This document shows positions 3,837-63,377 of a stretch of DNA of 64,000 nucleotides, one piece after another; within the stretch, counting starts at the first letter, position 1, and each line of letters begins with the position of its first letter. Made by a program: the position numbers and the translations under genes. The notes under the pieces are model-generated. The model did not search any database and was not told the DNA's origin. It saw only the letters and a program-made list of their open reading frames with translations. The stretch lies in IMG/VR virus record IMGVR_UViG_3300033049_000066, positions 124,001-188,000 of that record; one strand, written 5' to 3'.

Positions 3837-4628
3837 ATGAGATCAACAGAATTTATAAACGAAGGCGTCGATAGAAATATCGCGGATGTTAAAGAAAATC
3901 ATCCGGACGTATATGCACTACTAAGTAAAATACTTGGATCTACGACGCTTGAAAAAAGTACTGTTAGCTCGTTTGACGCTGCTGGCGCGCACCAAGTCTT
4001 GGTACAAATTAAACCGTCAGCAGGACTAATTAATGCAGAGGCCGGATTCTATTCCGCTGGGATCGAATACGAAATAAAAATTGGGCCGGCGTCGCAAGGT
4101 GGGCTGAAATTACTTTCAGGATCCAACGGAGACATGAGCTGGACGGTAAAAGACAGTGGCCGAATCGGCAATTTTACACAGACCTGGCAGTTTAGTATAG
4201 CGAAAACCAACACCAACGAAGAGCTGGTTAGCGCACAGTCGGTTTTCGCTTCAAACGCTTCAAATATACTAGGACAAGAAGGCATTACGTTTTACGAAAA
4301 ACCTAGCTATTGGTCGGACTTAGAACGCAAAGCACTTAGCAATGACGCATTAAGAACTGCCGAATTTGCACTTGAAGAGGAAGGCATTGAGTTAAAAGAA
4401 TACGATGCGTTTGAAATATTTGCGATTAATCCTAATCGCAAATCTTCGTATGTTAGAGGACCGTTGCAGTCCGTAGAAAATATGCCGCAAGAAAAAGTGT
4501 TTGTAATACATAATTTGCCGTACAGCGACGAGGAACCTTCAGTCACGTCCGACCCCAAGGTGGGAACATTCTTAGTTGATGCACACGGCGCACATAGTTA
4601 TATTAGATCGTGGATTTTAATAAAATGA
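3837..4628 (+). CDS. Putative internal virion protein with capsid-targeting-like N-terminus
   Basis: MRSTEFINE N-terminus; ATAAATA at 3809-3815; AAGGA RBS. Confidence 0.65.
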   Translation: MRSTEFINEGVDRNIADVKENHPDVYALLSKILGSTTLEKSTVSSFDAAGAHQVLVQIKPSAGLINAEAGFYSAGIEYEIKIGPASQGGLKLLSGSNGDMSWTVKDSGRIGNFTQTWQFSIAKTNTNEELVSAQSVFASNASNILGQEGITFYEKPSYWSDLERKALSNDALRTAEFALEEEGIELKEYDAFEIFAINPNRKSSYVRGPLQSVENMPQEKVFVIHNLPYSDEEPSVTSDPKVGTFLVDAHGAHSYIRSWILIK

Positions 4629-5246: not shown

Positions 5247-5642
5247 TTATTTTATAACTTCGAGGTCACTATCTCGTTTTTCAACAGCAATATAATAGGT
5301 TTTATACGCTTTAATCACGGCATTAAGTTGCTTAATTAGTACCTGCTGATCGCTAATATTAAGTGATAATAATTCATAATCATCACCTGCGAGCCCAATA
5401 ATTGCAACTGGTTTACCTTGCTTGTGTAACTGGGCGAAGACTTGATTAACGTTATCTGCAGTTACAACGATCCATTTTAACTCACGATGCACGTACCGAT
5501 CAGGTTCGGGAAGGACAAGTGGAATACGTTCCACTGGTTCAGTTTTCACTAACAAATCACGTGTCCAGCTGCATCCAGACAGCATCATTATGATTAATAG
5601 TACAGAAAATAGGTTAGTAAATAGGTTAGTAAATAGTTTCAT
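5247..5642 (-). CDS. o-spanin (Rz1-like lipoprotein)
   Basis: Lipobox LSGC after hydrophobic signal; Pro-rich segment; overlaps the i-spanin stop. Confidence 0.75.
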   Translation of the reverse strand: MKLFTNLFTNLFSVLLIIMMLSGCSWTRDLLVKTEPVERIPLVLPEPDRYVHRELKWIVVTADNVNQVFAQLHKQGKPVAIIGLAGDDYELLSLNISDQQVLIKQLNAVIKAYKTYYIAVEKRDSDLEVIK

Positions 5643-6118
5643 AGCTTTGGTTTGTAGTTCGGGTTCGCGATGTTCGGACAACTAGAATTTGTTTGACTTT
5701 TCTTAGTCGCAGTTAATTCTTTAGCTGTTAGCTCAGAACCGCTCAATATTTCAAAACATCGTCCGACATCAGAGGTGCCCTTGTTGACAATTTTAGTGAT
5801 AAGTCCAGGCTTGTTCTCTGCGAGGTATGCGAGATCGTGCTTTGCTAATTTTGTACGGAGCGCGTTATTTTCTGATCTAGCATTTCTGAACTGCTTACTC
5901 ACTAGTAGTACCTGCCGACCGCTACGCACAGCATCTTTCTCCATTGTCGAGATGGTCGCTTTTTGTAGCGTGACAGCAGTGCCAAGGCGAGAATTATTAT
6001 CCCTGAGCGTCTTGATTTCATCTTGTGACCAGCTATAGTACCAATACGCGCCGCCGGCAGCAGAGAATAGAAATATAGCGAGCACACCGTATATATATAA
6101 TTTTGCAGATCCAATCAT
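5639..6118 (-). CDS. i-spanin (Rz-like)
   Basis: N-terminal TM followed by coiled coil; paired with downstream lipoprotein. Confidence 0.75.
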   Translation of the reverse strand: MIGSAKLYIYGVLAIFLFSAAGGAYWYYSWSQDEIKTLRDNNSRLGTAVTLQKATISTMEKDAVRSGRQVLLVSKQFRNARSENNALRTKLAKHDLAYLAENKPGLITKIVNKGTSDVGRCFEILSGSELTAKELTATKKSQTNSSCPNIANPNYKPKL

Positions 6119-6276
6119 AATATTATTTAGCCTATCTAATAGACACGATGCAATAAATATGCTATAATATATGTCTTCATAAATATTCTAAGTATTGTTA
6201 AACTCGGCGCCAGTTACTTGTAGGCGTACCAACTAACGAGGTGGGGTGGTTATCCAAAACCGTACAATACGAATAT

Positions 6277-6445: not shown

Positions 6446-6670
6446 ATGAGAATAATAAATAAAATTAAGAAATTGTTAACTCGTAAGAAAAGTGCCGAAG
6501 CCTTAAAAATGTGGGAGGGCCTCTGTGCCGCTCCAACCGAACCTTCCAAATCACTGGACATTGACGTGGGGCATTATATGTCCTTGCAAACGCAACGTGA
6601 AAAAGATCAGTACTTCATTGATTTAAACAGACGGCGTAGCAAGGGATATGAATATGAAAAATTGCCATAA
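6446..6670 (+). CDS. Hypothetical protein
   Basis: ORF with AGGA RBS. Confidence 0.5.
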   Translation: MRIINKIKKLLTRKKSAEALKMWEGLCAAPTEPSKSLDIDVGHYMSLQTQREKDQYFIDLNRRRSKGYEYEKLP

Positions 6671-6678
6671 ATACAAAT

Positions 6679-7098
6679 ATGAGAGCACAAGAATTTATTA
6701 AAGAAGTACAATCACAAGGTGAGATTCGAGGCCTTGAGGCCGAGTTAGACAATATGTTTAAGACCCTCGGGCTGGATGTTGAGTTCACATCACACTTTGT
6801 TGAAAGATTACTAGGGCGTGAGAAGCAAGTCACTTACAATGAAATACTAGCTGCGTTCGCCAAGTTAAAAAAGAAATATAAAAGACAGCTTCTTAAAGCT
6901 AAAAAAATAGACATGGGCCCGGCCGCACTACAAGATCTTGACAGTGACTTAAACGTTTTATTTGCGATACAACCAGACAAAAAGAACAATGAGTACGACC
7001 TAGTCAACATCACGGTCAAGCGTAAGGATCCTGAGAAATTTCACACAGACACACCAAGTGGCAACGCGACACCATTTAAAGTTGGATCAAAGAAATGA
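6679..7098 (+). CDS. Putative internal virion protein with capsid-targeting-like N-terminus
   Basis: MRAQEFIKE; ATAAATA at 6667-6673. Confidence 0.7.
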   Translation: MRAQEFIKEVQSQGEIRGLEAELDNMFKTLGLDVEFTSHFVERLLGREKQVTYNEILAAFAKLKKKYKRQLLKAKKIDMGPAALQDLDSDLNVLFAIQPDKKNNEYDLVNITVKRKDPEKFHTDTPSGNATPFKVGSKK

Positions 7099-8057
7099 GA
7101 GCACAAGAATTTATTAAAGAAGGTGGCTGGTCATCTGTCACAACACAAGGCACAATTATCACACCACAAACGATTGCTAATAGCATTTCAGTAATGAAAT
7201 CATTTCAGGATTCATTTAATGAACTGTTGGCTAGTCAAGATATTCCACCAATTAAGATTGGTAATCCGGTCGGAAGTGGCACTTACTATAAACGTGACTT
7301 AGCTCAAAACCCAGACAAAGAGTACGGTGATATTGATGTTCAATTCATTCTGCCTCGCATAGAAGGAAAATCTACTAACCAAGCACAGCAGATGTATTTT
7401 AATGCTGTGAAAGAGTTCTGTCGACAAAATGCGAATTTCGAAACAGATAACGGAATGAACGTAATCTTCCAAATCGGTGATGATTTTATTCAAGTTGATC
7501 TCGTTGCGATATTTGACGATCGCTTGGAATTTACAAAGGCACTGGCGCCCGAACACGGTACAAAAGGCGTCTTGAGCGGTAGCTTGTATTCTGCGTTAGG
7601 GCAGGCTCTCGACATTAGTATAAGTGATGCTGGAATTCAAGGCAAAACTATAGATGATAAACTTGTAAGCTACCGTAAATCCAAGGGCACAACGCTCAAC
7701 ACAATCTCAACTGATCATCAAAATTGGGCGATGGATATCGCTAAATTCATGGGTGCGAAGACCGCATCCCCGCTGCTTAAAAAGTACCCTGGCATGAAGG
7801 ATGAGGTTCGCATAGCAGATATTGTCAAATCTGTCAAGGGAATTGCGCAGACATTAGCACAGAATCATATTTTGCCAGTGCCGTACTGGGACGCAGAAGA
7901 GCTGATACAAACAGTCCGTGATATTTATGTACAGAAAATCAACGCTGTGATCAACTCCTCCAAGTTCAACAAGGCTGAAGGCGCGGCAGTAGCAAAGGCC
8001 GCTAAGATCAAAGATATGCTAGCTACACGCAGCGCAGAAATCGCCAGCCTTTTCTAG
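7095..8057 (+). CDS. Pol-beta-superfamily nucleotidyltransferase with capsid-targeting-like N-terminus
   Basis: MRAQEFIKE; VGSG...YGDIDV...IQVDL motifs. Confidence 0.7.
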   Translation: MRAQEFIKEGGWSSVTTQGTIITPQTIANSISVMKSFQDSFNELLASQDIPPIKIGNPVGSGTYYKRDLAQNPDKEYGDIDVQFILPRIEGKSTNQAQQMYFNAVKEFCRQNANFETDNGMNVIFQIGDDFIQVDLVAIFDDRLEFTKALAPEHGTKGVLSGSLYSALGQALDISISDAGIQGKTIDDKLVSYRKSKGTTLNTISTDHQNWAMDIAKFMGAKTASPLLKKYPGMKDEVRIADIVKSVKGIAQTLAQNHILPVPYWDAEELIQTVRDIYVQKINAVINSSKFNKAEGAAVAKAAKIKDMLATRSAEIASLF

Positions 8058-8137: not shown

Positions 8138-8222
8138 TAAGTCATTGATTCTTGGGTAAAATAGAAGTTGACCTTTTGGGCTAAATGTTATATAATATAT
8201 AACAGTTCGGAAACGAGCAACA
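8138..8222 (+). promoter_or_regulatory. Repeated early promoter cassette (IHF box + TTGAC-17-TATAAT + conserved leader)
   Basis: TAAGTCATTGATT 8138-8150; TTGACC 8168; TATAAT 8191; AACAGTT..GCAA leader. Confidence 0.85.
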
Positions 8223-8225
8223 ATT

Positions 8226-8546
8226 ATGAATACAGTACAAAACACATTCGATCGCTTGAAGTACGACATCCAAGAAGATGATTATGGCAGCCGATATTGG
8301 TACATAAATGGTGAATTGCACAGAGAAGATGGGCCTGCTATTGAATTCGCAAATGGTGCTAAGTGGTGGTACAGAAATGGCAAATTACACAGAGAAGATG
8401 GCCCAGCAATTGAGTTTGCGGATGGCTCCAGGGCCTGGTACAGGCATGGCATAAGACACAGAGATGATGGACCGGCTGTTGAATATTCAGATGGCGAAAC
8501 ATACTGGTACATACACGGTGAGGGTCGCGGTGAGGAGGGACCTTAG
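8226..8546 (+). CDS. HR(E/D)DGPA-repeat protein
   Basis: About 23-aa repeats WYxNGxLHREDGPAIE. Confidence 0.85.
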   Translation: MNTVQNTFDRLKYDIQEDDYGSRYWYINGELHREDGPAIEFANGAKWWYRNGKLHREDGPAIEFADGSRAWYRHGIRHRDDGPAVEYSDGETYWYIHGEGRGEEGP

Positions 8547-13191: not shown

Positions 13192-14190
13192 ATGAAAAAA
13201 ATTGTAAGAATGGTATTTGGTTCCCACATGTACGGATTAGATACGCCGAATTCTGATATGGACTACAAGGGTATTTACTTGCCGGACCTCGACGAGCTAT
13301 TGCTTGGTACGGCAGCGAAGAATATCAGTTTCACCACCGGCGATAACACGTCCAGGAATGGTGCTGAGGACGTCGACGAAGATTGGATGTCGTTGGGCGA
13401 GTTCATGAAGCTTGCGTTGAAGGGTGAGACTGTGGCACTGGATATGCTTCACGTGAATCCTGACTTGGTGAACGTCGAGCTTGATCCTGAATATGGTTAC
13501 ATTTGGACCGAGTTAGTTAAATTACGCCACTTGTTTTACACTAAGAATCTTAAATCTTACATGGGATACGTCAAGAAACAAGCAGCAAAGTACGGCCTCA
13601 AAGGTAGCCGCATTGCGAATATGCGCGAATCTATTAAAGTGCTTGAGCAGTTTAATGTAGAGCTACTGTTATCTGACGTATGGTACGGGCTGCCTGAGAA
13701 TGAATACGCTAAGAAGATTGAGATGCAGACAAAAACCGGCCAGACAAATCATTTCTACGAAGTGAACATGAAAAAGTATCAGGATACAAATTCTGTCGGA
13801 TATGCCCTGGAACGGATTCAAACCGCGCTGGATAGCTACGGTAATCGTGCTCTGCTAGCTGAGAAGAATGAAGGGGTTGATTGGAAAGCAGTCTCCCACG
13901 CTCTCCGTGCTGGATTTCAGTTGCGCGGCATTTTAAAGAGTGGTGGGTTTAGCTATCCACTCAAAGAAACCGAGTACCTCGCAAAAGTTAAGGCAGGTGA
14001 GCTTGATTACAAAACAGAAGTATCAAACGTGCTAGAAGCTGTAATTACGGAAATTGACGAACTTGTGTTAGTATCCGATTTACCGCAGACCGTAGATGTT
14101 AAATTTTGGAATAACTGGCTTTTGTTTGTGTACATGACTGCCCTGGCAGTACCGGACGTTAACAAATTTATGGAGGCACAAGATGAATAA
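13192..14190 (+). CDS. Phage nucleotidyltransferase (Nuc-transf-type)
   Basis: FGSHMYGLDTPNSDMDYKGIY; DWKAVSHALR. Confidence 0.85.
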   Translation: MKKIVRMVFGSHMYGLDTPNSDMDYKGIYLPDLDELLLGTAAKNISFTTGDNTSRNGAEDVDEDWMSLGEFMKLALKGETVALDMLHVNPDLVNVELDPEYGYIWTELVKLRHLFYTKNLKSYMGYVKKQAAKYGLKGSRIANMRESIKVLEQFNVELLLSDVWYGLPENEYAKKIEMQTKTGQTNHFYEVNMKKYQDTNSVGYALERIQTALDSYGNRALLAEKNEGVDWKAVSHALRAGFQLRGILKSGGFSYPLKETEYLAKVKAGELDYKTEVSNVLEAVITEIDELVLVSDLPQTVDVKFWNNWLLFVYMTALAVPDVNKFMEAQDE

Positions 14191-24130: not shown

Positions 24131-24241
24131 GAGGCGAGGAAAAATGGATGGCAGTCTTAAATACTTGTCGAGAATCCCTTATCATTTGGCTCTGTCAGGT
24201 TGAATGGTTGGGGTAACTTATTTTAACTGATAAATAACTGT

Positions 24242-24634
24242 ATGAAAAGTGCAGAATTTATAGTAGAAGGTACAGAAATCGTTGTAGGCGATCAAGTCGT
24301 TGCGAAGCGTTCCGCTCGTGGTGGGGACTTGGGTCCAGCGATACACATGGCAGTGACAAAGGATGAGTGGGATCGTGTCAAAGGTCAACGTGCAAATACA
24401 GATATTCAATCCTACGATATTGCTACAGCTGAAACGATTGTCAATGACATGGTAAAGCAAGGTGGTGAGATCATATGGAAATCAGCAGCAGAATATAATG
24501 CTGATGCACGTGAACTTGAAAATCACAGATTTAGAAACAATGCTGATGTCCAAAGTGGATTTGCCGCAGCAATCAACAGCACACGTGATAACGCCAGCGC
24601 AACCGCAAAAGCGTCACTATCACGAATTAAATAA
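24242..24634 (+). CDS. Putative internal virion protein with capsid-targeting-like N-terminus
   Basis: MKSAEFIVE; ATAAATA upstream. Confidence 0.7.
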   Translation: MKSAEFIVEGTEIVVGDQVVAKRSARGGDLGPAIHMAVTKDEWDRVKGQRANTDIQSYDIATAETIVNDMVKQGGEIIWKSAAEYNADARELENHRFRNNADVQSGFAAAINSTRDNASATAKASLSRIK

Positions 24635-46428: not shown

Positions 46429-47508
46429 ATGCAGATGATGAAAAAACAATACGATTTAGTCGTTTATATCGGCAGATTTCAACCAAGACACAACGGCCAC
46501 CGCGAAACAGAGCGGATAGCGTCGACATTAGCAGATAATGTGCTAATACTAATCGGGTCCGCAAATGGGCCTCGCACTACACGAAACCCCTGGACATACA
46601 AAGAACGTGCTGCTGAAATCCGCGAGGATTCCGAAGTCATGAATCTCATGATCGACGGATTAGATGATTACACGTACAATAATAACAAGTGGGTACAGCA
46701 AGTTGGTGAGAAAGTTCAACGTGCGATCGACAAGGTTATTGAAATTGATTTATACACTTCTTCACCGGATTCGCTCAGCAAAGGTGACACCGTTAACGTC
46801 GCAATTGTAGGGCATGATAAAGATCACACTAGTGATTATCTAAACAATTTCCCCCAGTGGGATTACATCGAAGTTCCAGCATATCCTTCAAGCACTGATA
46901 GAATTGATTCCACTAAAATTAGACAGCTAATGTTCAGTGGACAATTGTCATTTATTGACGGGGTGGTTCCGGGCAGTCAAGTCCGTGATTTTACAAAGTC
47001 CAAGGAATTTGCAGGATTACTTGACGAATGGAACTACATCGCAGAATATAAAAAAGCTGCTAGCGCCGCACCGTACGAAACGATCTACACAACCGTAGAC
47101 GCTGTCGTTGAACAAAGTGGGCACGTTCTGCTCGTTCAACGAGGCAGTTTCCCCGGCAAAGGCTTGTGGGCAATGCCCGGTGGATTTATTAATCCCAAGG
47201 AAAGAATTGTAGATGGCATTATTCGTGAACTACGTGAAGAAACAAAACTTAAAGTACCCGAGAAAGTACTGCGAGGATCAATCACGCACCGAGACGTTTT
47301 TGACGATGTCGAGCGTTCGACACGTGGGCGCACAATTACTCACACTGCGTTAATCCAATTAGATAATGCATCCTCATTACCAAAAGTGAAAGGAAGTGAC
47401 GATGCGATGAATGCCAAGTGGTTCTCACTTGCAGAGTTTGAAACAATGAAAAATATCATGTTCGAAGATCACTATTCGATTATAAAAAATATGCTGAGTA
47501 GAGCATAA
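46429..47508 (+). CDS. nadM: Bifunctional NMN adenylyltransferase / Nudix ADP-ribose pyrophosphatase (NadM-Nudix)
   Basis: YIGRFQPRHNGH, RNPW, STKIR; Nudix PGG..RELREET; RGRTIT; GSDDA. Confidence 0.92.
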   Translation: MQMMKKQYDLVVYIGRFQPRHNGHRETERIASTLADNVLILIGSANGPRTTRNPWTYKERAAEIREDSEVMNLMIDGLDDYTYNNNKWVQQVGEKVQRAIDKVIEIDLYTSSPDSLSKGDTVNVAIVGHDKDHTSDYLNNFPQWDYIEVPAYPSSTDRIDSTKIRQLMFSGQLSFIDGVVPGSQVRDFTKSKEFAGLLDEWNYIAEYKKAASAAPYETIYTTVDAVVEQSGHVLLVQRGSFPGKGLWAMPGGFINPKERIVDGIIRELREETKLKVPEKVLRGSITHRDVFDDVERSTRGRTITHTALIQLDNASSLPKVKGSDDAMNAKWFSLAEFETMKNIMFEDHYSIIKNMLSRA

Positions 47509-48786: not shown

Positions 48787-50253
48787 ATGAACAAAATACA
48801 AAACATGTTCGCACCACAAGCGAACGACATAGCATACACAGAAGATAAGAAATTAAACATTAGCTTGATATGCAGAATTGACAGCTATAAATTTTCGCAT
48901 CCGTTTGCCTATCCGAACGATATAAACATTGATGGGATGACCTCATACGGTGAGACCCGCGTGTCACCAAAAGATACAATCGTTCCATTTGGTATGCAAA
49001 TGCTTCTTAAGCGTTATCTTACTCAGACAATTACAATGGCTGACATTGACGCGGCTGAGGATTTTAGCACCGCACATTTCGGCAGGACACTGTTTGATCG
49101 CAGTGCGTGGGAAAAAGTTGTCCGTGAATACGCTGGCAAGCTCCCGCTGATAATCAGAGCGGTTCCGGAAGGAACAGTCATGAATGGTAGCCAGCCCATC
49201 TACTCAGTTACAGTGCTAGACAGAGATTTGTTCTGGATGAGTGCCGGCTTTGAAACGCTCATCCAACGCGCGATTTGGTACCCGACGACGATTGCCACGA
49301 TGGATTACATCGTGCGCAATGAGATGGAAGCGTTCTACGATAAGACAGGGGCTGACAAATCTTTGCTCCCGTTCGCCCTGCATGATTTTGGAGGACGTGG
49401 GGTGAGCAGTGCGGAAACCGCCGAGATTGGTGGCGCCGCGCATCTTGTTAATTTTCTAGGCAGTGACACGGTCGAGGGCGTTCTTGCTGCGAATTTCTAC
49501 TACAAGGAAGAAATGAGCGGGTTCAGCGTGTACGCTACGGAGCATGCCATACAGTGTTCCTTCGGTAGCGGGACAGATGACGCGCTACGCTATCTTAGAC
49601 GACAGCTACGCAATGCCCCGCCGGGTTCCGTCGTAAGCATTGTTATTGACGGTTACGACGTGTATCGTGAAGCAAATCTACTATGCACCGTGATGAAGGA
49701 TGAGATTATCGCCAGCAAGGCAAAGGTCGTGTTCCGGCCGGACAGTGGGGACATGATGGAAATTATCCCTCGCTTGCTATTGATGCAATCAGAAGCATTC
49801 GGTACTACAAAAACTGCCGAGGGCTACTTACAAATAAATTATGTCGGGCTCATCCAAGGGGATGGAATTGACAGAGCGATTATTAGCGAGGTCTTGGATT
49901 TAGTTACGTTCTTGGGCTTTGCGGCTGATACGGTGATGTTCGGCAGTGGAGGCGCTTTGCTACAAAAAGTGAATCGTGACACGCTGAAATTCGCACAGAA
50001 GGCCTGCGCTATTCTCGTGGATGGTGAGTGGGTTGGTATCGCAAAAGACCCAATTACCGATCACGGTAAGAAGTCCAAGGAAGGGGTATTGACTCTCGCA
50101 AGAAATATCGAGAGTGGTGAGCTAACGACGGCGCGGTTAGACCAGGGGTCGTTGCCGGCGGGGATGGAAGACGCGATGAAGCTCGTGTACTTCAAAGGGG
50201 ATTTGTTCAATGAAATTACATTCGCAGAGGTCAGAAAAAATGTTATCAAGTAA
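48787..50253 (+). CDS. nadV: Nicotinamide phosphoribosyltransferase (Nampt)
   Basis: DSYKFSH, LHDFGGRG, GSDT, ATEH, RPDSGD, QGDG, FGSGGALLQ..NRDT, KDPITD..KKSK. Confidence 0.95.
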   Translation: MNKIQNMFAPQANDIAYTEDKKLNISLICRIDSYKFSHPFAYPNDINIDGMTSYGETRVSPKDTIVPFGMQMLLKRYLTQTITMADIDAAEDFSTAHFGRTLFDRSAWEKVVREYAGKLPLIIRAVPEGTVMNGSQPIYSVTVLDRDLFWMSAGFETLIQRAIWYPTTIATMDYIVRNEMEAFYDKTGADKSLLPFALHDFGGRGVSSAETAEIGGAAHLVNFLGSDTVEGVLAANFYYKEEMSGFSVYATEHAIQCSFGSGTDDALRYLRRQLRNAPPGSVVSIVIDGYDVYREANLLCTVMKDEIIASKAKVVFRPDSGDMMEIIPRLLLMQSEAFGTTKTAEGYLQINYVGLIQGDGIDRAIISEVLDLVTFLGFAADTVMFGSGGALLQKVNRDTLKFAQKACAILVDGEWVGIAKDPITDHGKKSKEGVLTLARNIESGELTTARLDQGSLPAGMEDAMKLVYFKGDLFNEITFAEVRKNVIK

Positions 50254-62294: not shown

Positions 62295-63377
62295 ATGAAA
62301 GATTTATATACGAACTTATTAGCATTATCCGACAATGATGATACTCCATTTTATCATTCAGATCAAGTGCTATCAAATAATGAATTCTATCGAATTTTCA
62401 GTTATCATTTTACTGATCGTGAATCTTGGCTGCTACCGAGTGCGTTGGAATCTCGCGGAATTATGTTCGAAACTACTGCAGATGGTGAGTTCATTCGCAT
62501 CGCGTCACGCCCAATGCACAAGTTTTTCAATCACAATAGTCGGACTTTGCAAGGCGAGGTTGATTTCATCAACTACGGTACGCCAGCTTACGTCATGCAC
62601 AAGGCGGATGGTTCGCTGATTAGCTCGTACTTAAACGCTAATGGGGAGATTTTATTAAAGTCCAAGACTAGCATCGGGTCGGACTATGCGCAGCTCGCGT
62701 TGAAACTTTTGTTTGCTGACACGGCGATGTACGATTTTGTGAAGTGGTGTGAGGCGGATGGCTACACGGTGAATATGGAGTTGGTGTCGCCGGATCCGAA
62801 ATTTCGAATTGTGCTACACTACCCGGAACCGCGGCTGATTGTGCTAAATGTGCGACAGCGTGAGAGTGGTGGGTACATGGATCCAAGGAGCATCCCTAAG
62901 GAATTTTTCACAGGGTCGGCTGACGTCGGCGCTTTGCTCGAGCTTGACACGGTTACGAATTTGGAAGGCTACGTTGTGCTGGATGACAAGGGCAACTGGT
63001 GGAAGGAAAAAGCGGACTGGTACCTCGAGCGGCATCGTGCTAAGGATTTTGTAAACCAGCCTCTCGCTTTCGTCCAGCTGGTGTTGAAGGATGAGGCGGA
63101 TGATATTTTTACGTTGCTCGCGGATCAACCAGAGGTCTTGGCGGAGATGCAGGCGTTACAGCACAGTGTCATTACGGTCGCGAATGGGTATGTAAACACG
63201 GTGACAAAGTACTGGCAGGAAAACAAAGATTTATCACGCAAGGATTACGCAATCAAAGGTAAGGAAAATTTAGACTGGATGGAGTTCATGCTTGCGATGA
63301 AGTACTACTCAGGCACTGAGCCCGACTGGAATGAGTGCCTGCTAAAACAACTTAAGAAAATTAACTGGGATATTTAA
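62295..63377 (+). CDS. T4 Rnl1-like RNA ligase
   Basis: ESRGIMF, SRPMHKFFN, motif I KADGSLI, NMEL, EGYV. Confidence 0.9.
   Translation: MKDLYTNLLALSDNDDTPFYHSDQVLSNNEFYRIFSYHFTDRESWLLPSALESRGIMFETTADGEFIRIASRPMHKFFNHNSRTLQGEVDFINYGTPAYVMHKADGSLISSYLNANGEILLKSKTSIGSDYAQLALKLLFADTAMYDFVKWCEADGYTVNMELVSPDPKFRIVLHYPEPRLIVLNVRQRESGGYMDPRSIPKEFFTGSADVGALLELDTVTNLEGYVVLDDKGNWWKEKADWYLERHRAKDFVNQPLAFVQLVLKDEADDIFTLLADQPEVLAEMQALQHSVITVANGYVNTVTKYWQENKDLSRKDYAIKGKENLDWMEFMLAMKYYSGTEPDWNECLLKQLKKINWDI

Follow-up and report, generated by a model that had tools for sequence, protein, structure and literature searches.

A phage gene that joins a short capsid-targeting-like leader to an enzyme domain raises the question of whether the enzyme is packaged and delivered into the host with the phage DNA, and of what it would do there. 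The gene considered here is open reading frame (ORF) 7095 (positions 7095-8057, 320 aa), which together with its neighbor ORF 6679 (6679-7098, 139 aa) lies on the plus strand of a 64,000-nucleotide stretch of DNA. This stretch, referred to below as the window, corresponds to bases 124001-188000 of the 293,278-bp IMG/VR virus record IMGVR_UViG_3300033049_000066, whose GC content is 41.6%. A preliminary description of the window had proposed that ORF 7095 encodes a packaged nucleotidyltransferase (NTase) and that ORF 6679 encodes a second tagged protein paired with it. The explanation that we favor, with moderate confidence, is that ORF 7095 is a packaged, protease-processed and injected enzyme that extends nucleic-acid 3' ends, and that ORF 6679 is a separate cargo cassette.

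The genome has the head genes that such a delivery would use. A T4-like head module was found in the gene order portal, small proteins, protease, scaffold and capsid. It includes a Peptidase_S77 prohead protease of the gp21 type (genome 247032-247664; PF03420, E value 4e-24, 82 bits) and a Gp23 major capsid protein (PF07068, E value 2e-97, 324 bits), the latter being 68-70% identical to its counterparts in the jumbo phages PA5oct, Vibrio 2.275.O and Sinorhizobium Phosso. The stretch is also present in seawater metagenome runs, as DNA contigs of the probable source samples. Judged by these genes and samples, the source is a large marine T4-like (jumbo) phage.

Both ORFs begin with the leader MRAQEFIKE (6679-6705 and 7095-7121). 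In T4, the capsid targeting sequence (CTS) is MKTYQEFIAE; it is removed by a single cut of the prohead protease, the trailing cargo is retained in the head, and the CTS alone suffices to load foreign proteins (PMC8442874). The T4 protease gp21 cleaves after Glu in the motif I/L-x-E (PMC12991175). The internal proteins of the T-even phages have only this leader in common, and the ip genes have been found by detecting it (PMC12373910). MRAQEFIKE shares with the T4 CTS the initial M, a basic residue, Q, E, F, I and the final E, and it ends in I-K-E followed by G, which conforms to the gp21 cleavage motif; the cut in ORF 7095 is predicted after E9, between positions 7121 and 7122. Residues 1-11 of ORF 7095 are disordered in the AlphaFold2 model described below.

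Among ORFs of 50 aa or longer, the 293-kb genome has nine that start with the pattern M[RK]xxE[FI][IV]xE; the reversed genome and ten 3-mer shuffles have none. The nine tagged proteins are mutually unrelated and without Pfam assignments. Four of them are in the window: besides ORFs 6679 and 7095, these are a 263-aa ORF at 3837-4628 (plus strand; MRSTEFINE, then G), which has a homolog with the leader MKSKEFIIE on the related contig L006, and a 130-aa ORF at 24242-24634 (plus strand; MKSAEFIVE, then G). Another tagged ORF, of 112 aa and basic (isoelectric point (pI) 10; MKSTEFITE, then W), is located between the portal and prohead protease genes (genome G000:C1:245764-246102; L002:170-505). This is the position that the genes for the small prohead core proteins occupy in T4.

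The sequences flanking the two ORFs were examined for promoter-like elements. The box CATAAATA at 6666-6673 (plus strand) matches the T4-type late-promoter box (NATAAATA); we take it to be one base off the T4 late-promoter consensus. This putative promoter ends 5 nt before the ATG of ORF 6679 and overlaps the stop codon of the upstream ORF. The motif ATAAATA is enriched upstream of genes and of tagged ORFs: of 403 crude gene calls, 46 have it in the 60 nt upstream, as have four of the nine tagged ORFs. It is also strand-biased (76 occurrences on the plus strand versus 35 on the minus strand). In 12 of the 403 gene calls it starts 12 nt before the ATG. These include ORF 6679 and ORF 24242 (boxes at 6666-6673 and 24229-24236, for example); when the 8-base NATAAATA is used for the scan the box starts at -13, as does GATAAATA, 13 nt before the ATG of ORF 24242. 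From a T4-type late promoter so close to the start codon, the mRNAs would be nearly leaderless; the motif may instead have some other role in the start of translation. Downstream, the unit 6679-8057 is limited by the sigma-70-like promoter of the next gene (8168-8196, plus strand), which consists of TTGACC, a 17-nt spacer and TATAAT, with 11 of 12 matches.

Because of the likeness to the T4 CTS, the I-K-E at its end, its predicted disorder, the late-promoter-like box and the separate downstream promoter, capsid targeting is the best reading of the leader, and ORF 7095 would be packaged on this reading. The packaging-like tag of the preliminary description is thus borne out as a close match to the T4 CTS, with an I-x-E end, in a genome that has both a gp21-type protease and gp23.

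The nearest known parallels are the internal proteins of T4 (IPI, IPII and IPIII). As in those, a short leader of the same form, ending in I-x-E, stands on otherwise unrelated proteins, the genome has gp21 and gp23 homologs, and the genes behave as shuffled cassettes. The leader is nine residues long here and ten in T4, and packaging is a prediction here. The T4 internal proteins of known function are small inhibitors of GmrSD restriction enzymes (PMC12373910), whereas the cargo proposed here is a 34-kDa enzyme with a conserved active site. Another parallel to the putative role of ORF 7095 is T4 Alt, in that an enzyme would be carried in a T4-type head, processed and injected. Alt is a head-packaged ADP-ribosyltransferase that the prohead protease processes; it enters the cell with the injected DNA and acts before phage genes are expressed. 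The two differ in fold and chemistry (ADP-ribosyltransferase versus Pol-beta NTase) and have no sequence or structural relation.

What kind of enzyme is ORF 7095? The motifs of an NTase active site are all present: G60-S61-G62, in which G60-S61 (7272-7277) forms the hG[GS] motif of the NTase fold; D79-I80-D81 (7329-7337), which supplies the metal-binding carboxylates after the invariant G78; and D135 (7497-7499), the third catalytic carboxylate, in a QVD motif. In an alignment of 189 near full-length relatives, conservation is 100% for G60, S61, G78, D79, D81, D135 and G158, and 99% for Y77 and K157. K157-G158 (7563-7568), at the start of the first helix of a thumb-like subdomain, is a signature of the family and recurs in a distant paralog described below. 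Since the active-site residues are invariant, the relatives can be read as active enzymes, and ORF 7095 is predicted to be a catalytically competent NTase of the Pol-beta superfamily. The Pol-beta NTase motifs and fold claimed for it in the preliminary description are confirmed by this intact active site together with a confident structural model.

Relatives of ORF 7095 are numerous: 79 were found by a word-indexed search, and an exhaustive search with a profile yielded 225 clusters (at 50% identity), of which 143 lay below 1e-30. All family members with a recorded source or taxon are viral or metagenomic. Neither Pfam (at E values up to 1) nor PHROGs gave any match to ORF 7095, the DNA_pol_B_palm and DNA_pol_B_thumb profiles of Pfam included, and searches of the PDB sequences with the family profile returned nothing meaningful.

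The AlphaFold2 model of ORF 7095, computed from a 37-sequence alignment, has a predicted local distance difference test (pLDDT) value of 91.5 and a predicted template modeling (pTM) score of 0.86. When it was compared with the PDB using Foldseek, family X polymerases came first (E value about 2e-4, probability 1.00), and CdnC and poly(A) polymerase ranked below them; the top matches found by VIA-align were likewise all family X polymerases, and Pol X clusters of the ESM Atlas matched with template modeling (TM) scores of 0.52-0.61, normalized by target. The protein shares the alpha-beta core fold of solved NTases and has palm and thumb subdomains in the Pol X arrangement. In the model, residues ~12-241 look like a minimal Pol X core, of the kind seen in the smallest family X polymerases, and are followed by a three-helix extension (residues 240-320). 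There are also distinct differences. Identity to African swine fever virus (ASFV) Pol X and other family X polymerases (pol beta, lambda, mu and TdT) is only 12-13%, and the typical Pol X thumb motif is not recognized. In addition, ORF 7095 has an extra invariant N-terminal segment (GGW...TQ.T.ITP), and its C-terminal helical extension carries a conserved loop, SSKF[DN]KA, represented by K290-F291-N292-K293 (7962-7973; K290 92% and K293 90% conserved).

The preliminary description had listed Pol X merely as one of four classes with which the protein might be compared, the others being the CCA-adding, CD-NTase and MNT families. Family X provides the closest structures, and the other three classes did not fit. 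The combination of an NTase core with a PAP/OAS-type helical second lobe, which marks the CD-NTases and the cGAS-OAS group, was not found in ORF 7095, nor were the PolyA_pol profile and head-neck-body architecture of the CCA-adding and poly(A) polymerases. For an MNT antitoxin, an NTase of ~100-130 aa accompanied by a HEPN RNase would be expected, whereas ORF 7095 has 320 aa in three subdomains, its neighbor is not conserved, and Pfam detects no HEPN domain.

These comparisons bear directly on the proposal that the enzyme repairs tRNA 3' (CCA) ends and is delivered against host defenses that target tRNA. The NTase fold would suit such a role, and RNA repair themes do occur, in the form of an RnlA-type RNA ligase gene at 62295-63377 (plus strand) of the window and of RNA_ligase-like domains fused to relatives of ORF 7095. 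However, no PolyA_pol or CCA-adding profile matches ORF 7095, CCA-adding enzymes are not among its top structural matches, and the window already encodes a separate NTase at 13192-14190 (plus strand; match to phrog_388 'nucleotidyltransferase', E value 2e-84), which is presumably of the CCA type. Repair of tRNA ends, one of the functions suggested in the preliminary description, has therefore become less likely, and we consider it highly improbable.

The beginning of the NTase domain provides a second line of evidence for processing. In about 120 relatives the domain starts with GGW (rarely GGY or GGF) preceded by h-x-E. This arrangement occurs after short leaders, such as MRxxEFIxE, MKLxELFE and MKTFKEFLLE, and also at internal junctions of fusion proteins of 450-1700 aa, such as ...ITE/GGW, ...VSE/GGW and ...LDE/GGW (the slash marks the junction). 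In ORF 7095 the predicted mature N-terminus, Gly-Gly-Trp, is encoded at 7122-7130, and its residues G10 and G11 are 96% conserved. Cleavage of the gp21 type, or removal of the start Met before Gly in relatives that start M/GGW, would always leave a Gly-Gly-Trp N-terminus. Because GGW would be exposed in every case and these glycines are so highly conserved, the junction points to processing at this site and hints that a free N-terminus matters for function.

The fusion proteins themselves suggest a comparison with the polyvalent proteins of phages. Relatives of the NTase are fused to ParB-like, kinase-like, DUF6934, DUF6267, Amidoligase_2, GGACT and GH19 lysozyme-like domains, and also to RNA_ligase-like plus cytidylyltransferase-like domains. 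Polyvalent proteins travel with the phage DNA (Iyer, Burroughs, Anand, de Souza, Aravind 2017, PMC5512222), and the present fusions resemble them in that the NTase is one module of phage proteins of 450-1700 aa. The fusion architectures match this pattern of injected proteins, and their junctions likewise carry a protease-type site. They differ in that the separating protease would be the prohead protease and not an in-built zincin. The Pol-beta NTase described in polyvalent proteins is a minimal four-strand version, found in firmicute conjugative elements and fused to ArdC-N (PMC5512222), and belongs to another family. The family of ORF 7095 is a new one without a Pfam model.

The recurrent partner of the NTase is DUF6267, which was found with it in three arrangements. 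The first is fusion, in P0168, P0157 and an ESM Atlas cluster of 63 members. The second is coupling to a neighboring gene: on a 69.7-kb phage contig (L017:8001-10069), the stop codon of a leaderless NTase gene (M/GGW) overlaps the start of a stand-alone DUF6267 gene. The third is a split-intein gene in the genome studied here, outside the window (genome 16259-19414; L021:1260-4415), in which a distant paralog of the NTase is joined to DUF6267, the intein following directly after KWDG. The N-terminal domain of this paralog begins ...LME/GGN and shows the GDxD, QxDL and W..PE..KG signature of the NTase family (hhalign E value 1e-3). Its gene is fractured: a 439-aa ORF contains the NTase-like domain, the start of DUF6267 ending in KWDG, and an N-intein; next, in a different frame, comes an HNH-like ORF that stands alone; and the first frame then resumes with a C-intein ending ...HN/S and the rest of DUF6267. 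A tagged ORF with the leader MRANEFIME is located directly upstream (genome 15390-16259). The 'fractured gene' layout has so far been reported for enzymes of DNA synthesis and repair (PMC2677866). Trans-splicing would restore an NTase-like-DUF6267 fusion.

DUF6267 has the motif KWDG (KxDG) near its start and GGEGYV (EG[YV]V) near its end, which is the order of ligase motifs I and IV, and its ESM Atlas feature score to RNA_ligase is 0.76. No similarity to RNA_ligase-like domains was seen by BLAST; phmmer found nothing for DUF6267 in the PDB, and a profile search of the PDB gave only spurious coiled-coil matches. In the ESM Atlas, DUF6267 is also fused to Cu/Zn superoxide dismutase and to cytidylyltransferase-like domains. 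On its motifs, DUF6267 may reasonably be taken to form a polymerase-plus-ligase module with the NTase. In this the system would resemble the Pol X-ligase fusions of giant viruses, since its Pol X-like module recurs in fusion with, or next to, a domain that bears covalent-nucleotidyltransferase motifs; it is unlike them in that the putative ligase nature of DUF6267 rests on motifs and on an hhalign E value of 0.09.

Several observations weigh against a packaged enzyme that acts on nucleic acids. The leader pattern is found in none of PA5oct, Vibrio phage 2.275.O and Melnitz, of which the first two are the nearest cultured relatives by capsid protein; since PA5oct lacks the pattern, its published virion proteomics cannot be used in support. 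A homolog of the NTase was detectable in none of a collection of 50,697 phage records (cultured phages). Fifteen of the retrieved relatives start M/GGW with no leader at all, so delivery in the capsid is not strictly needed. As to the chemistry, the helix-hairpin-helix and 8-kDa DNA-binding modules of most Pol X enzymes are missing from the model of ORF 7095, although ASFV Pol X also lacks them, and Pol X-like chemistry is not excluded thereby. The hhalign comparison of DUF6267 with RNA_ligase-like domains covers motifs IV-V only, so the ligase assignment is at the level of motifs, and domains that are fused in a polyvalent protein do not have to act on a common substrate.

The first of these observations fit an enzyme that is real but not packaged, the leader being a translation initiation region, a regulatory propeptide or a site at which the prohead protease activates the enzyme in the cytoplasm. 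In that case the NTase would act late in the cell, for example in DNA repair or in end processing during replication or packaging. In line with this, the region could also be transcribed early, from a sigma-70-like promoter at 6140-6168, and phage prohead proteases do cut non-virion substrates, such as host CD-NTases (PMC12991175). Set against it are the near-identity in form of the leader to the T4 CTS, which loads foreign proteins by itself, the presence of the leader on nine proteins that are not related to each other, including one encoded within the head gene module, and the resemblance of the fusion architectures to injected polyvalent proteins. We regard retention in the cell as unlikely and favor the packaged enzyme, which is probably delivered into the host with the DNA.

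If the enzyme is injected, its target might still not be a polynucleotide. It might instead NMPylate a host protein, or make or consume a nucleotide signal directed against CBASS-like or other nucleotide-based defenses. There is precedent for an injected enzyme with a protein target in T4 Alt, which ADP-ribosylates RNA polymerase on entry. CD-NTases (CdnC, CdnG, CdnE and CdnB), an alarmone synthetase and terminal uridylyltransferases (TUTases) are among the structural matches of ORF 7095, and the kinase-like, amidoligase and GGACT fusion partners are not nucleic-acid enzymes. Protein-modifying NTases have been described in polyvalent proteins (PMC5512222). However, the closest structures are family X polymerases, and neither CD-NTase-like signaling nor MNT-like NMPylation, both suggested at the outset, corresponds to the best structural matches. 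We think a target of this kind unlikely. The nucleic-acid 3' end is the substrate most consistent with the evidence.

The remaining question is whether ORF 6679 and ORF 7095 work together. The ATGA coupling and the common first nine residues reported in the preliminary description were confirmed in coordinates and sequence: the start codon of ORF 7095 overlaps the TGA stop of ORF 6679 at 7095-7098. The likeness extends to the DNA, with 28 identical bases at the two starts (6679-6706 = 7095-7122), a match equaled in none of 100 shuffles. Because the other leaders in the genome have only 18-22 of 27 bases in common with these two, the identity reflects a recent duplication or recombination, that is, copying beyond what selection on the peptide alone would maintain, and the shared bases look like the footprint of recombination between cassettes. 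No alternative genetic code is needed for these ORFs. Searches of the 50,697 phage records with the region (blastn) and with the NTase (tblastn) returned zero matches.

In related contigs both genes adjoin other genes. The closest homolog of the NTase (73% identical; L004) follows a PMM-family gene, and homologs of the 139-aa protein (L006 and L008) adjoin other small genes, with another tagged cassette on the same contig. The two genes thus do not stay together elsewhere. Their pairing here is probably incidental, and they are probably independent cargo cassettes joined by recombination within the leader-coding sequence; the functional pair proposed earlier is not upheld.

A functional pair would mean that the NTase regulates or completes the 139-aa protein, much as an MNT-HEPN-like NTase is combined with an RNase, the complex acting after injection. 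Apart from the translational coupling and the identical leader, the 139-aa protein itself offers some hints of this. Its family, of at least 142 clusters, all unnamed, has F36, H39, F40 and R43 100% conserved and T112, D86 and N92 98% conserved in 120 relatives. The invariant His and Arg in an N-terminal helix and the conserved C-terminal Thr (H39, R43 and T112) recall the His and Thr/Ser configuration of phage BECR RNases, a resemblance of motif only, and there is a weak endoribonuclease PHROG match (E value 0.089). Against this, no Pfam BECR model (PBECR/DUF4258) matches ORF 6679, the DUF4258 profile (PF14076) finds nothing in the genome at E values up to 10, and the fold of the protein is not predictable, its AlphaFold2 model (pLDDT 50.5) being too poor for a fold search. 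A leaderless NTase is, moreover, coupled to DUF6267 instead. With the adjacency lost in other contigs, a functional pair appears improbable, and we retain the reading of two separate cassettes.

The mature form of ORF 6679 would have a mass of ~14.8 kDa and a pI of 9.2. Most members of its family start MKLFEL..., and a subset has a long leader; distant relatives occur in T4-like Melnitz phages and a Paraglaciecola virus. Neither ORF 6679 nor the longer family members have a match in Pfam. The protein weakly matches the C-terminal end of phrog_23027 (E value 3e-6), and an ESM Atlas feature search with it returned unnamed viral clusters only.

The ORFs, the leader and its enrichment, the NTase fold with its invariant active site, the conserved h-x-E/GGW junction, the gp21 and gp23 genes and the association with DUF6267 were observed here. 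Beyond these, we infer that the protein is packaged, cleaved and ejected, that it acts on a nucleic acid and that DUF6267 is a ligase; these steps would combine as follows. The nine-residue leader would carry the NTase into the scaffold core of the prohead, where a gp21-type protease would cut after I-K-E and expose the invariant Gly-Gly-Trp N-terminus. The mature 34-kDa NTase would remain inside the head until it left together with the DNA. Once in the cell, it would most likely add nucleotides to a nucleic-acid 3' end, by gap filling or end tailoring, probably in concert with the ligase-like DUF6267 protein and before, or independently of, phage gene expression. ORF 6679 would be a separate cargo cassette, placed beside the NTase by recombination within the leader-coding sequence.

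Other genes in the window and genome were noted in the course of this analysis. An NMNAT-NUDIX fusion is encoded at 46429-47508 and a nicotinamide phosphoribosyltransferase (NAMPT-type) at 48787-50253, both on the plus strand; together with the RNA ligase mentioned above, these indicate that the phage carries predicted NAD salvage and RNA repair genes beside the tagged NTase. Two overlapping ORFs on the minus strand (5247-6118), one of 159 aa with an N-terminal membrane helix and the other of 144 aa with a lipobox-like LSGC, resemble by eye an i-spanin/o-spanin pair. Downstream of the unit, and preceded by the strong promoter at 8168-8196, is a 106-aa ORF (8226-8546, plus strand) with three YWY.NG.LHREDGPA repeats that look MORN-like by eye. 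The head module, outside the window, contains two extra ORFs. One is located between the protease and scaffold genes (G000:C1:247664-248260), and its KWYIGS motif suggests a GIY-YIG homing endonuclease; the other is inserted after the capsid gene (G000:C1:250827-251318).

Leader-directed head proteins of T4-type phages are already known. What is new here is the predicted cargo, an enzyme from a new Pol X-like family whose conserved N-terminus would arise by processing and whose recurrent partner is ligase-like. One may speculate, as a long shot, that marine jumbo T4-like phages carry in the virion a kit for nucleic-acid repair or end modification. It would comprise a minimal zymogen Pol X-like polymerase, switched on by exposure of GGW through the prohead protease or, in leaderless forms, Met removal, and the ligase-like DUF6267. 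Within the first seconds of infection, the two would act either on the phage genome as it enters or on RNA of the host or the phage. In addition, the 27 bases that encode the leader would serve as a recombination handle for swapping injected cargo genes.

Among the internal proteins of T-even phages, a function has been assigned to three, all of them small inhibitors that act on one class of restriction enzyme. The same leader logic seems to reach a distant lineage of uncultured jumbo phages. At least nine candidate cargo proteins are marked by it there, and one of them belongs to an enzyme family that comprises 225 sequence clusters and has neither a Pfam model nor a cultured representative. 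With the leader as a simple criterion, injected proteins could be sought in the metagenomic sequences of T4-like phages, and the invariant GGW N-terminus and the repeated link to DUF6267 are two testable handles on mechanism. If the NTase is packaged, it would offer a defined small Pol X-like scaffold for study, and polymerase-type chemistry would be available to the phage before any gene expression of its own.

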